DNA from: Podarcis bocagei
Taxonomy: Eukaryota
Direction: 5' to 3' (one strand)
Assembly (NCBI GenBank): GCA_964188305.1
Contig: OZ076898.1
Length of the DNA: 64,000 bases
Made by a program: the position numbers and the translations under genes. Of this stretch, positions 18,150-24,093 are shown in pieces. The notes beneath the pieces are model-generated. The model did no database searches. It was given only the letters and a program-made list of their open reading frames with translations, and was not told where the DNA came from. Positions within the stretch are counted from its first letter, which is position 1; the number at the start of each line of letters is the position of its first letter.

Positions 18150-18740
18150 ATTGGAAGAAGACTTGTAACAATGTGTCGCAAGAACGCAGCACCTCCCGGG
18201 AAATCGGGGGTTTGATTTAGATGCAGTGACGCAGAGCCTAATAAATTCTCAGGCGCCGTTACTGAAACGAACGTGTGTGACTCTGCACCAATCAAGCCGC
18301 GGAACCAAAGGAGCACGAGCCAATCAGAACAAAGTACGAACTCAACATTCCGTCAGATTGTAAGAGCGGCGCGAGATGACGCAAGGGGCACGTACAGAGA
18401 CGGCGCGAGCACCCCACCAATCAAAAGCAGAGGGCGGGACTAGACTGCCGGAGAATAGACTGACACCGGAAACGGAAGCTAGGAGGGCGGAAGCTTCGGA
18501 AAGAAACAGCAAGAGCCAGAATGAACATTCTTCCCAAGAAGTCATGGCACGTGAGGAACAAAGACAACGTGGCCAAGGTGCGGCGGGACGAGGCGGAGGC
18601 CGAAGCGCAGCGGCAGAAGAAGGAGGCCCGAGCACTACTCGCTGAACAGGAGGTACGTTGTCACCAAGGCGCATGCGCGAAGATTTGCGCGTGCGCAGTT
18701 TTCTAGTCTGCGCGATGTCTCCCTTGCGCATGCGCTTAGG
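18150..18740 (+). promoter_or_regulatory. LENG1 CpG-rich promoter and first-exon island
   Basis: CpG-dense. CCAAT boxes at 18288, 18320 and 18417; GC box near 18432; tandem ETS-like CCGGAAACGGAAG near 18466; NRF1-type GCGCATGCGC at 18669-18678 and 18726-18735 in intron 1. Confidence 0.75.
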
Positions 18741-21700
18741 CATCTACTCTACCAGTTTAAATTGATGTCAAAAGGCAAACATATGAGGATGGTGGTTGGG
18801 CGAGTGGAACATGGCGGAGAAAAGCCAGGCGAAGCGCTTACGGGTGGGAGAAGACAGGACAATGGACTGGCGCAAATGGAAGCAGGAAAAGAAGAAGGAG
18901 AAGAAGAAATGGAAGGAGCTGAAGCTGTTGAGGAGACTGGAGAAGAAGATGATGCAGGAAGTGGCAGAGAAACAGAAAGAGGAGGCAGAGCCCATTGAAG
19001 ATAAAGGATGCAACTACACAGTCAGCGTCGCCCTTCCGGGCTCCATTCTCAGCAACACCCAGTCGGCAGAGTTGCGGACATACCTTGCTGGGCAGATCGC
19101 CAGGATTTGCGTCATCTTCTGCATGGACGAGATTGTGGTGTTTGATGAGCAAGGGGAGGATGCAAAGACAGTGGAAGGTGAATTTGAAGGGATCAAGAAG
19201 AGAGGTCAGGCCTGTGTGCAGCTGGCCCGGATTCTGCAGTACTTGGAATGTCCCCAATACATTAGGAAGTCTTTTTCCCCCAAACACCAGGACCTCCAGT
19301 TTGCAGGGGTCTTAAACCCCTTAGATAGCCCCCACCATGTGTGGATAGGTGAGGAATTGGAGTATTGGGAAGGAGTGGCTTTGTCATGACCCACCAAGCC
19401 TGGCCGGGGATCCTTTGTGAACTGTGGAATGCAAAAGAAGGTACAGATTGATAAGCAGCTGGAGGCAGGCCTTCGTGTTACAGTGCGTCTCAACCCACAG
19501 AAAAATCCAGAGAGCCAAACACAGAAGGGGGGTGGTTGTTTCATCACACCAGCTTCGAACTGCTTCTGGGCTCTACTGGGGCTACAGTGTCTGCTTGGCA
19601 TCCTGTCTGAGTGTTGTGTTTGCTGAGTCCCCATATAAAGAAGGCTACGATCTCTCCATTGGAACCTCTGAGCAAGGGACCTCTGTGGACCAGGCAACAC
19701 TGACTCCTTTCAGACATGCTTTGATAGTTTTTGGAGGCAAGCGTGGACATGGACCTGAACCTGGAGGTCACAGATCCAAGCACCTTGTTTGACTTTTATT
19801 TGAATACCTGTCCAGGGAAGGGCAGCCGCATCATCAGGACTGAGGAAGCAATTCTCATCTCTCTGTTGGTGCTGAGACCTCATATCAGTGAAGCAGTGAA
19901 GAAAGGCAGTGGCCTCCGAATAGAAGCAGAAACTCAAGCATCCAACACGGGCAGACCATCATCAATCTTTACCTCTTCCAGCCAACTTAAGACCGAAATG
20001 TGAAGCTGGACCATCTTCTCTCTCTGTTGGGAGGTCAGGAAACTCACCTCTCTGCTGCCACTGGATGGCAGTGAAACAGGTTGGAGCATCCAGACACAAA
20101 CAGAGGGGGAAGGGGGAAAGGACTAGCTCAGTTGCCACTTCTCAGAATCATCAAACTTGGGAAACAGTGAAGACCTAAGTGTGGCGATTGACTGGGGGAT
20201 GATGCCCTCTAGCCCAAATGCAATCTGTTGCAACCACATTCATGTTTAACACAGGAGCAACAACTTTATCCACAAAATTAAGACTGCTATACCTACAGTT
20301 TAAGAAGAAACGTATCAAGTGTGTGACCTAATGTGATAATATTCCAGTAGTATCTTGATCAATGAAATGGCCAAACCTTTTTAGGTGTAAACCAGTGGTT
20401 CCCAAAGTGGGCAATACTGCCCACTGGTGGAGGGCAGTGCAATTACTTAGCAGAGCAAAAAGGACTATCAGGTATTAAAAAGCTGGTATCACTGGATCAA
20501 GTTCATCAATTTTGTTGAATTAAATTAAATAGTTTTAATTGGGGGGAGAGGCAAACATATAAAAGTCAAGTATAATGAAGCACCTGAATTCATACACACT
20601 ATTTCCAAAACTTGCTATATTAAATAGTTAACCACCAGTTACCATTGTTGTGAATGTCACTGTGCTTGATCCTGTATACATTTGAGCATTGAACAGAAGT
20701 GTTCCAGACATAAGATACCTCTTACATTTCATAGAATATTATATATATTTTTCTATACCCAGGAGTGTGTACATATATGCTACTCTGCCAACTATGGATA
20801 ACATTTCATACATCAGATTTAACGGGCTGTAGTCCACAGAAACGTGTGTCACAATAAACCTGATAGTCTTAAAATGCCACACGAATTTGTGTTGCTGCTC
20901 TTGTGTTCATATTGTATATATACCATGTTGCTGCTTTTTTGTTTATAACACTTGCTCTTGACTTCTGTCCACCCAGTTATTTGTGAAAATACATGAATTT
21001 AAAAGTGGTGGGCTTAGTGGTTCCCCAATACATGCACACACTTAACATTTTTGCTTTGTCCCAGTCTTATTCTATCATAACTCCTGTCTCCAGTAATAGA
21101 ATAGATTTATTGTTAATTTGACTGCAAAGTGGCTATCTTGCAATGAGTCACAGGCTTTTAGAGAATAATGTAAGAGATTGGAAAGGAAAGGGCAGGTTGG
21201 CTATCGTAGCAGAGAAATGTGCCACAGCATGGTAACTATGCAGGCAGGGACGGCAGGGAATTGCACCTTGGGCAAATTCTTCTCCTTTGATCCTAGGCCC
21301 GGACTGAATTCCTACGCAAGAAAGCACGCCTGTCAGCTCCAGGAGGTGATGACAGCAGCTCGGACATCCTCGCTTTAGGCTCAGAAAGGCCCTCACGCCA
21401 TCTAAATCTCTTTCAAGAGTTGGAAGAAAGTGGCAACAAAGAATATGAGGAGGAGAAGAGGCAAGAGAAGGTAATGGGAGGAGGGGAGCTTGTTGTGGAG
21501 GCTTTCTTTTCACCAGCTGCAAACTTGGTGGTCTAAAGGGCTCCAACCCAGCCAGGGTGCAACATGAACTCCTTTGCCCCACTTGCAGAAAATAACTCTG
21601 GCAGAGTTGGTGTGGGGTGGTTTGGGTTCTTGCTACCCTCTGGCTGTGCAAGGGCAAAATGTGGAGGGCTTGTAGCATACATATTCAGGGGTTTATTTAT

Positions 21701-24093
21701 CTGGCAAAGAAATTTATTTTTGAAGTATCTGTTCCCACGTGCCTGTCATACATATGGAACCCTGGTTTGCCATGTCCTTTGTGCTCGACGTGCTTCTCCT
21801 TCCAGAAAATATAGGCTTCCAGCTTCCACCCTTTTGGGTTAGCCTTCATTGTAATCTGTTACTGCCTGGTAAGTACTCACTGGAAGGAAAAGAATATACT
21901 GTAGTGAGGGCCAGTGAATGGTCTGGGAGCATTCAATGCTGTAACATTGTTGAAGCTAAGTGGATAGAGGGGACCTGAGCAGTATCTGGCTCAGGGATAG
22001 CCAATACAACCCCCTCCATATGTTGTTGGGACTCCAACTCCCATCAGCCTTAGTTAGCATGGCCAATGGTCAGGGATGGTGGGAGTTATAGTCAAGCAGC
22101 ACCTTTGACTCCCCCAATATAGGGGAAATAGGGATGTAAGTTGACAGTCCATGGAGCAATCTCACACAGGCAGCATTAACAGTACTTCGAGTAACACTGC
22201 TTTGGGTTATTTCACTCCTCCCAGGAGCGTCGGGAAAAAGCTCTGGGTATCCTCACGTACTTGGGCCAGAGTTCAGCAGAGGCCCAGACGAGTCGTCCTT
22301 GGTACCAGGAGCTGCCAGAACGCAGTGAGGCCGTCGCCAAAGATGAGAAGCTGAAAGGGAAGTTGGATCCCCTGGCCGAGATGGAAAGGCACTTGTGGAA
22401 GAAGAAGGGATCCCACAAGAAAGATGGGAAGAAAGACAAGCGGGAGCAAAAAGGAAGCGGAGGAACTCTGGCTCTCGGGTGCGTTCCTTTAGCAGCCTAG
22501 GCCACAGCACAGGACACTGCTGCTCCTTCCTGCTGGCTGAGACTGGATGCCCCAGACAACAAACACCCACCCTTAGGAGGGGCGGGGGAGGGAAGCCACA
22601 CATGTGGGAAATGCAAGGTGTGCGTTTCAGGTAGCACCTCCCAACTGTAGATGGCTGCTCTGAAAAGAGGAAAATGCTCTTTTGTATAAAGTAGAGGGGA
22701 GTTTTACAGAGCAGCAGTTACAGCCAAGTCTTAAGAAATAGGTCAATGAGTGTGAGGGGGGTCGTTTGCCTGCTTTTGTGCTGCTTCAAAGAATCCAGCT
22801 CTCAGAGATAAAAGACTTAACAGTAATTTGTCAAAGTAATAAAATTGACTCCTGCTCTGTTGCAGGGTGGGATATTGGCCCTGGAAAAGTGGTGGAGGGG
22901 GACTGGAAGTTCAGCCTTTAAGTATTGCCCCCTACTGACCATGCAGTGCCTTTGTCAGGTGTTGAAAGGAGAATATAGGGCAGGTGTGGGGAACCTTTGG
23001 CCTGACAGATGTTGCTGAACCTCAGCGCTACCCCTAAACTTACGTCCCCTCCCCTACATTTTATTGGCAATAGCCTCTGTTGCATCCCAGGACAAGAGCA
23101 TAAAACAGCAGGAGAAGAGCACAAAACAAGAGATTCCTGTAGGCAGGATGGTGAGGATTACAGACATTTTGAGGGTCCAATCTACACTTCCGGACACGGG
23201 TGGCGCTGTGGGTTAAACCACAGAGCCTAGGACTTGCCGATCAGAAGGTCGGCGGTTTGAATCCCCATGACGGGGTGAGCTCCCGTTGCTCGGTCCCTAC
23301 TCCTGCCCACCTAGCAGTTTGAAAGCACGTCAAAGTGCAAGTAGATAAATAGGTACCACTCTGGCGGGAAGGTAAACGTTTCCATGCACTGCTGTGGTTC
23401 GCAAGAAGCTGCTTAGTCATGCTGGCCACATGACCCGGAAGCTGTACGCCGGCTCCCTCGGCCAATAAAGCGAGATGAGTGCCGCAACCCCAGAGTCGGC
23501 CACAACTGAACCTAATGGTCAGGGGTCCCTTTACCTTTACCTATCTACACTTCAGTTTCTAACCCAGGCATGCGGAACCTCAGCCCCAGGCATAAACTCA
23601 GCCTTCTGGGGCTGTTTGGCTCTTGAGACTTTCCAGGCCGCATCCCTCTCACCAGCTCCACTTTGCACCCTTAAACTCTGATAGTTTTTGCTGCCTCAGA
23701 TGGATAGAGGAGGATATGCAAGTGTAAAGAAGCTAGTCTATTGCGTACAAAGGTAAAATACATATTTTTTGCTTTTGTCTCTGGTCCTGCCTACCACCAG
23801 AATGCCCTCTGCCAACACAGCCTCTGGGCTGAAAAGGGCTCCAAACTCCTCTTCTTAAACCCTTTTGTTTCCACTTCAGGCCTGCCCCTTCCTCAGCATC
23901 GTCGTCATTGGAGCAACTGCGCCAGGAGAGGTTGCGCCGCGAGAAGGCAGAGCGAGCCCGCGCTGAGAGCCTTCTAGCCCAAAGGGCAGGCACCCTCCCA
24001 CTCCAGGAGGAGGAAACGGACGAAAGAAAACGGGGCTACAACTCTCAGTTTAACCCGCAGCTGGCAAGAAAGAGGGTCTGGGAACCACAGTGA
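18521..24093 (+). CDS. LENG1: Leukocyte receptor cluster member 1, 4 exons, about 257 aa
   Basis: Exons 18521-18652, 21297-21470, 22225-22478, 23880-24093 (774 nt, phases consistent). Characteristic N-terminus [24 protein letters not shown], plus [30 protein letters not shown] and C-terminal [11 protein letters not shown]. Confidence 0.93.
18785..20548 (+). pseudogene. SPOUT1: Processed (intronless) pseudogene of SPOUT1/C9orf114 SPOUT methyltransferase in LENG1 intron 1
   Basis: ATG at 18811 and uninterrupted homology: [54 protein letters not shown]. Premature TGA at 19387-19389, +1 G in the run at 19527-19532, deletion near 19731-19738, terminal stop at 20001-20003. Direct repeat AGGCAAACATAT at 18773-18784 and 20549-20560. 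Confidence 0.92.
23191..23542 (+). mobile_element. Sauria SINE, full length
   Basis: GGTGGCGCTGTGGGTTAAACC head, BovB-like 3' end, (ACCTTT)n tail, 11-bp TSD ATCTACACTTC at 23180-23190 and 23543-23553. Confidence 0.9.

Follow-up and report, generated by a model that had tools for sequence, protein, structure and literature searches.

A decayed SPOUT1 retrocopy in the first intron of LENG1 in the lacertid Podarcis bocagei

Why the first intron of LENG1 should contain a nearly complete copy of another gene, that of the rRNA methyltransferase SPOUT1 (C9orf114), is the question raised by a stretch of 64,000 nucleotides from Podarcis bocagei (contig OZ076898.1, assembly GCA_964188305.1), hereafter the window. 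An earlier reading made from the letters of this DNA (the sequence-only reading) described the element as a retrocopy that could borrow the LENG1 promoter, cause premature polyadenylation of LENG1 transcripts or give rise to an N-terminal SPOUT1 fragment. The structural part of that reading is borne out: a sense, near full-length and intronless SPOUT1 retrocopy resides in LENG1 intron 1, with all exon junctions fused and colinear with 12-exon parents, and it starts 132 bp past the donor of LENG1 exon 1, where about 130 bp had been given. As to what the copy does today, we consider it very probable that it is an old processed pseudogene that drifts neutrally and is transcribed passively, with neither a SPOUT1 product nor a demonstrated effect on LENG1. 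In this scenario, a capped and fully spliced SPOUT1 mRNA of an ancestor on the Podarcis lineage would have been reverse-transcribed and the cDNA inserted just downstream of LENG1 exon 1, probably by the machinery of the long interspersed element L1. The copy would then have drifted neutrally under germline methylation, and would today be transcribed passively within LENG1 pre-mRNA and lost when the intron is spliced out, without giving a SPOUT1 product.

Identity and boundaries of the copy

The best protein matches of the 192-codon open reading frame (ORF) at the beginning of the copy are lacertid SPOUT1 proteins, with 91% to a Zootoca isoform. Parental loci were compared from Lacerta agilis (L002), Zootoca vivipara (L003), Podarcis muralis (L005) and Pogona (L004). 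In the parent, the coding sequence is divided into 12 exons over ~8 kb, whose computational splicing reproduces protein P0242 exactly. This intron-containing gene is found at a KYAT1-SPOUT1-ENDOG locus in Lacerta, Zootoca, Podarcis and Pogona, and in Zootoca and Pogona it is seen to be flanked by an aminotransferase gene and an Endonuclease_NS gene. In the window, the 12 exon blocks of the three lacertid parents are colinear with no intron sequence between them, meeting at 18847, 18896, 19007, 19167, 19259, 19307, 19437, 19510, 19612, 19713 and 19845, and all 11 parental introns are missing from the copy. It is composed of an extra G at 18785, a 25-nt 5' untranslated region (UTR), the 12 fused coding exons (18811-19919) and a 3'UTR to 20540, followed by GGGGGGAG. 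Pieces of the Pfam domain PF02598 (profile positions 1-125, 141-166, 166-251 and 253-300) lie in successive frames of 18785-20548, the first of them in the frame of the ATG at 18811. The layout of 5'UTR, whole coding sequence (CDS) and 3'UTR proposed in the sequence-only reading therefore holds, but the 3'UTR part measures ~620 nt rather than 545, the parental stop being at 19917-19919. The stop at 20001-20003, formerly taken for the end of the CDS, is a read-through stop, since the parental TGA is now CGA.

The limits of the copy are informative about its origin. SPOUT1 homology begins 25 nt 5' of the ATG, at the start of the parental 5'UTR, with one additional G in front. Such a G is a common feature of capped 5' ends. 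Homology ends (...TTTTAATT) at 20540, which is 11 nt past the second of two ATTAAA hexamers, and beyond this point the parental genomes run into a GU/U-rich stretch (CGGTTTTGTGCAGGG, T run, G run) that is not present in the copy. Because these limits match the parental 5'UTR start and cleavage site, the copy corresponds to a mature mRNA from transcription start to cleavage site. The 12-bp direct repeat reported around it is an exact pair: the 12-mer AGGCAAACATAT has just two occurrences in the 64-kb window (18773-18784 and 20549-20560), against 0 expected by chance. Judging from the letters, the reconstructed target TC/AAAAGGCAAACATAT would resemble the preference of the L1 endonuclease, and L1 is the probable agent of the insertion.

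Could the locus nevertheless be the real SPOUT1 gene, mis-assembled, or a duplicate that arose at the level of DNA? This was judged with the contigs of four public runs, X1 and X6 (organism A), X19 (organism F) and X21 (organism G), of which X19 possibly comes from the assembled sample itself and is then not fully independent. One doubtful base, and nothing else, speaks for mis-assembly: the sixth G of a G run at 19527 is likely a homopolymer assembly error or a private allele. On the other hand, contigs of X19 reproduce, each with 0 differences, the 5' junction (18350-18825), a 17-bp deletion within the copy (record 11, 19558-19783) and the 3' junction (20496-20800), and organism G also has the 3' junction and the premature TGA described below. 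Moreover, all introns are lacking, and parental-type letters are separately present in X19, a source-like run in which minority contigs with parental letters stand beside copy-type contigs. An intron-containing parent was found in the three related lacertid genomes, and in X19 there are just these minority contigs. The X19 and organism G contigs together with the loss of introns rule out a mis-assembled gene or a DNA-level duplicate, and we give such an explanation practically no credence.

The 3' part of the copy shows some peculiarities of its own. The RNA contigs of a related species break off at 20507 and restart at 20568 with 49 non-fitting letters, indicating that the 3' end of the copy varies between species. 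A short interspersed repeat at 20340-20538, within the part derived from the SPOUT1 3'UTR, reaches ~100x single-copy depth in DNA runs; 20411-20478 is skipped by many contigs, and the repeat is also found in the parental 3'UTRs.

Table 1. Coordinates of the copy, its lesions and the surrounding LENG1 features in the window.
Feature	Position	Strand	Basis or remark
SPOUT1 processed pseudogene	18785..20548	+	1764 bases; blastn against parental loci L002, L003, L005
Target-site duplication AGGCAAACATAT, 5' copy	18773..18784	+	preceded by TC/AAA, L1-endonuclease-like target
Target-site duplication, 3' copy	20549..20560	+	exact repeat count in window
Residual ORF, 192 codons + TGA	18811..19389	+	start context AACATGG
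Premature stop, parental CGG (Arg193) to TGA	19387..19389	+	common to organism G; X21 record 18 covers it, its 3 differences lying elsewhere
Extra G in G run, +1 frameshift, doubtful	19527	+	left out of all X1, X6, X19 and X21 contigs
17-bp deletion against all parents, frameshift	19731..19732	+	CDS alignment; X19 record 11
Parental stop position, TGA to CGA in this species only	19917..19919	+	T kept at 19917 in X1, X6 and X21
Two overlapping ATTAAA poly(A) signals, inherited from parental 3'UTR	20519..20529	+	sequence, parental comparison
GGGGGGAG at expected place of poly(A) tail	20541..20548	+	comparison with parental 3' ends
LENG1 promoter/exon 1 CpG island	18200..18784	.	GC 0.54, CpG observed/expected 1.11; ends at insertion point
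LENG1 exon 1 coding part, 44 codons, Cir_N domain	18521..18652	+	Pfam PF10197, E = 1e-7; donor GT 18653
Two perfect GCGCATGCGC palindromes (NRF1-type by consensus)	18669-18678, 18726-18735	.	2 matches, 0 expected
LENG1 exon 2	21297..21470	+	acceptor AG 21295-21296; spliced contig X6 record 25 joins 18652 to 21297
LENG1 exon 3 (model)	22225..22478	+	frame-consistent GT/AG choice, without RNA support
LENG1 exon 4 with stop codon (model)	23880..24093	+	frame-consistent GT/AG choice

Decay, selection and age

In a CDS alignment with the three parents and an intact Zootoca retrogene (see below), the copy contains no intact ORF of parental length, owing to the stop at codon 193, the 17-bp deletion and the loss of the parental stop. 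The first of these lesions is an in-frame change of CGG to TGA and not a frameshift. The copy has accumulated 56 private substitutions in 1108 aligned sites (5.05%) versus 13-16 in each intact gene, and CpG transitions make up 21 of its 65 changes from the inferred ancestor. It retains 22 CpG dinucleotides versus 39-43 in the intact genes. The CpG observed/expected ratio falls from 1.11 in the LENG1 island to 0.31 in the copy, exactly at the junction, and therefore the LENG1 island has not spread into the copy. In view of this drop and of the loss of half of the parental CpGs, the proposal that the copy borrows the LENG1 promoter island finds no support. The depletion of CpG suggests that the copy may long have been methylated in the germline.

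Selection on the copy was assessed by counting substitutions along the branch that leads from the inferred ancestor to the copy, with the observed mutation spectrum as neutral model. The comparison of codons 1-192 with the remainder, suggested together with the original reading, reveals no difference: dN/dS (the ratio of nonsynonymous to synonymous rates) is 0.38 for codons 1-192 versus 0.46 for codons 193-374, and nonsynonymous to synonymous counts are 20:13 versus 19:13 (Fisher p = 1.0). Observed nonsynonymous changes versus the spectrum-corrected expectation are 20 versus 23.8 and 19 versus 22.9, respectively (one-sided P ~0.09 each). Substitution counts over the whole CDS thus hold no selective signal specific to the open 192 codons as compared with the dead half. 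The intact genes have synonymous to nonsynonymous counts of 10:3 to 19:4.

When was SPOUT1 copied? Three sites are common to the copy and the P. muralis parent alone, a parent with 13 further private changes, and 0 sites unite the copy with the Zootoca retrogene. Two of the private states of the P. muralis parent (A at 19348 and C at 19401) are found in parental-type contigs of organisms A and F. The site patterns shared with the P. muralis parent indicate that the SPOUT1 mRNA was copied early on the Podarcis lineage. This placement is by site patterns only, as the maximum-likelihood tree with Pogona as outgroup does not resolve the place of the copy among Lacerta, Podarcis and Zootoca. Parental introns diverge by ~8-9% between pairs of these genera, or ~4% per lineage, which is comparable to the 5% of private change in the copy, and thus the insertion appears to be nearly as old as the split of the genera. 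By published dates for this split, its age would be tens of millions of years. The insertion itself is shared with relatives: a contig of organism A spans exon 1, the donor, the intron and the start of the copy (X1 record 2, 18624-18878), and a contig of organism G has the 3' junction at the same locus (X21 record 21, 20501-22041). In organism G, the ORF contains the TGA at codon 193 plus an extra A after 19281 that breaks the frame at codon 157.

A further relative of the copy is hidden among the annotated proteins. UniProt A0A670K3Z2 (P0135) from P. muralis, with 371 residues and automatically named 28S rRNA (uridine-N(3))-methyltransferase, shares D44E, R67C, A290T, P298T and T346I with the window copy, and because none of these five derived residues occurs in any parent, P0135 descends from the same retroposition. 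It is conceivable that the copy functioned as a retrogene for a while after its insertion, or that it still does in some Podarcis such as P. muralis, having died only in the lineage of the window. Indeed, the P0135 model is open over codons 36-364, with neither the TGA (it has Arg at codon 193) nor the 17-bp deletion, the copy as a whole has a slight deficit of nonsynonymous changes (quantified below), and the Zootoca retrogene is an example of a SPOUT1 retrogene kept intact in a lacertid. However, in P0135, known from the protein model alone, codons 9-35 include a frame-shifted stretch and the C-terminus is altered, and there are, among 329 codons, 14 private replacements in addition to the 5 shared ones. 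Moreover, the deficit is marginal, equal in both halves and explainable by the share of the branch during which the parent was constrained, and the CpG decay argues for long-term silencing. We therefore regard a period of function as improbable, and P0135 as likely to be a mis-annotated pseudogene.

Transcription through LENG1 and the residual reading frame

The ATG at 18811 (AACATGG) does open 192 codons closed by the TGA at 19387-19389, as had been described, and it is possible to imagine that this ORF is translated as an N-terminal SPOUT1 fragment with a regulatory or dominant-negative role. The openness of the frame and the good start context speak for it. However, a transcript from the LENG1 promoter would present eight AUGs before 18811. 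Among them is the start of LENG1, the frame of which closes at 18706 in unspliced RNA, while those at 18765, 18783 and 18789 share a frame that runs past 18811 to 18998 and overlaps the start of the ORF. The product would align to residues 4-131 of the 313-residue chain of the human C9orf114 structure (4RG1; 8QSU) and hold profile positions 1-125 of the 302 of PF02598 (Methyltrn_RNA_3), and would thus be devoid of the C-terminal half of the SPOUT fold; the remaining profile is spread over other frames, a complete domain in one frame being absent. The 20 replacements in these 192 codons follow the same pattern as in the dead half. Since organism G and P. muralis carry different lesions, at codon 157 and within codons 9-35, respectively, the ORF is not conserved. 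The upstream AUGs, the lack of a selective signal and the disruption of the frame elsewhere in two relatives all run counter to the predicted fragment, and we deem its production highly unlikely.

RNA evidence bears on the fate of the copy in LENG1 transcripts. None of the runs registered as RNA contains this stretch, and X1 and X6 were taken as RNA by guess. In X6, exon 1 is followed directly by exon 2 in record 25, with the junction at the GT..AG sites and the copy skipped, which establishes that X6 is RNA and that normal splicing removes the copy. Intronic contigs lie past the copy at 20568-20881 (X1 and X6) and at 20913-21091 (X1), and thus transcription passes the ATTAAA signals. The claim that the copy is co-transcribed with LENG1 gains some support from the relative's contig that extends from exon 1 across the donor and the 5' junction as far as the copy (X1 record 2). 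Most contigs on 18947-20140 differ by 6-9% and have parental letters, reflecting cross-mapping of parental SPOUT1 mRNA, and one minor X1 contig has the copy-type letter at 19277. Contigs reveal neither the ends nor the strand of molecules, and their depth cannot rank the parts of a gene. Contig depth as a measure of termination inside the copy was set aside, in view of this caveat on depth and of the cross-mapping on 18947-20140.

One possibility is that a share of LENG1 transcripts remain unspliced after exon 1 and end at ATTAAA, with the copy as a site of intronic polyadenylation or an alternative last exon, and that the level of full-length LENG1 is thereby lowered. The product of such transcripts would have 61 residues, with the Cir_N domain followed by 17 encoded in the intron. 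The copy lies in the sense direction, and ATTAAA is present twice within 20519-20529, as the sequence-only reading had it, 11-21 nt before the former cleavage site. Furthermore, the X1 contig of exon 1 ends at the donor, with an overlapping contig entering the copy unspliced, so that transcripts ending there are possible, and contigs past the copy are shallower than those before it, though depth cannot rank gene parts. However, the GU/U-rich downstream element was left behind in the parent: it is absent after 20540, where the window has G6AG and an A-rich flank instead. The site is 1.9 kb from the LENG1 donor, and premature polyadenylation is usually suppressed near a donor bound by U1. Because the downstream element stayed in the parent and the donor is 1.9 kb away, the polyadenylation site is weak on sequence grounds. 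RNA contigs continue past it, exon 1 is found spliced to exon 2, and no 3' ends were observed in the contigs, which cannot show ends. Thus, it is unlikely that polyadenylation in the copy lowers LENG1 expression. A more elaborate form, in which the copy would serve as an alternative terminal exon of LENG1 in the Podarcis lineage, a substantial share of transcripts from the LENG1 promoter bypassing the first donor, reading into the copy and ending at ATTAAA to give a mini-protein of the Cir_N domain only and to tune LENG1 dosage, seems quite unlikely. If true, this would give reptiles a counterpart, without imprinting, of host polyadenylation driven by a retrogene.

Several observations weigh against a passive processed pseudogene. 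First, the poly(A) tail expected of an L1-mediated copy is absent between the last parental base at 20540 and the 3' duplication; tail loss, conversion by slippage, or use of a later cleavage site followed by deletion are possible explanations. Second, over the whole copy nonsynonymous changes number 39 versus 46.6 expected (P ~0.03). This slight deficit may date from the time, on this branch, when the sequence was still that of the constrained parent gene, or from a brief constraint on the copy early in its history. Third, the X1 contig of exon 1 stops at the donor and a second contig, which shares 30 bases with it, runs on unspliced into the copy, showing that unspliced molecules enter it. 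Lastly, the RNA evidence comes from contigs of a related species, organism A, which show no 3' ends.

The copy makes up two thirds of LENG1 intron 1 (18653-21296) and lies ~0.3 kb from the LENG1 transcription start. The NRF1 site that had been placed in front of it is present in the form of two perfect GCGCATGCGC palindromes, the nearer at 18726-18735; their identity as NRF1 sites goes by the consensus only. These two are the sole occurrences in the 64-kb window, and both reside in intron 1, 3' of the exon 1 donor and 5' of the copy. LENG1 itself encodes 257 residues, and the longest stop-free stretches of its single exons span 79-101 residues. The gene order in the window is TMC4 (+), LENG1 (+), CNOT3 (-), PRPF31 (-), which we take to be that of human 19q13.42. 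LENG1 introns 2 and 3 contain very high-copy repeats resembling short interspersed elements (21932-22130 and 23126-23722), with summed contig depths of 1e5 to 3e7 in DNA runs and many joints at 22048-22098 and 23191-23197.

Comparison with known retrocopies

In Anolis, ~400 retrocopies are known, among them 187 pseudogenes (PMC3136929). As one more dead retrocopy, the SPOUT1 copy in LENG1 is of little importance in itself. It does provide a clean, datable marker, since the insertion is common to several species of the Podarcis lineage, with lesions of its own in each lineage. It also carries a warning for annotation, since UniProt gives its P. muralis counterpart the name of a methyltransferase and RNA reads from SPOUT1 cross-map onto it.

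The copy resembles processed pseudogenes of the L1 type in having no introns, in spanning the whole transcript from its start to the poly(A) site, in its extra 5' G and in its 12-bp duplication at an A-rich target, and also in its stops, frameshifts, CpG decay and neutral substitution pattern. Unlike typical members of this class, it has G6AG in place of a poly(A) tail and is unusually near the transcription start of its host. With mouse Mcts2 in H13 and Nap1l5 in Herc3 it has in common that a sense retrocopy lies inside an intron of a multi-exon host. However, those two are intact imprinted retrogenes with a differentially methylated promoter CpG island of their own, and the use of host poly(A) sites upstream of the retrogene depends on retrogene transcription and methylation (PMC3467052). 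The SPOUT1 copy, in contrast, is broken, has a CpG observed/expected ratio of 0.31 and is without an island of its own.

The closest comparison is with Zootoca vivipara, in which a second, intronless SPOUT1 has an intact 374-codon ORF (L001:6001-7125, OY735902.1; P0122, with four XP accessions including XP_060127048). Its CDS is 2.8% from that of the Zootoca parent and has undergone 10 synonymous and 3 nonsynonymous changes relative to the lacertid consensus, and it groups with the Zootoca parent by 6 sites (maximum-likelihood support 86/94). Its 5' homology starts further upstream than that of the window copy, after an acceptor-like CTTTTGCAG. Both are full-length lacertid retrocopies of the same parent gene, whereas the loci differ, that of Zootoca being 5 kb from an ARID4-like gene. 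Judging by these features, the Zootoca SPOUT1 is probably an independent, functional retrogene with one or more recruited 5' exons. A by-product of more interest than the window copy itself is thus the recurrent retroposition of SPOUT1 in lacertids, which in Zootoca includes an intact retrogene.

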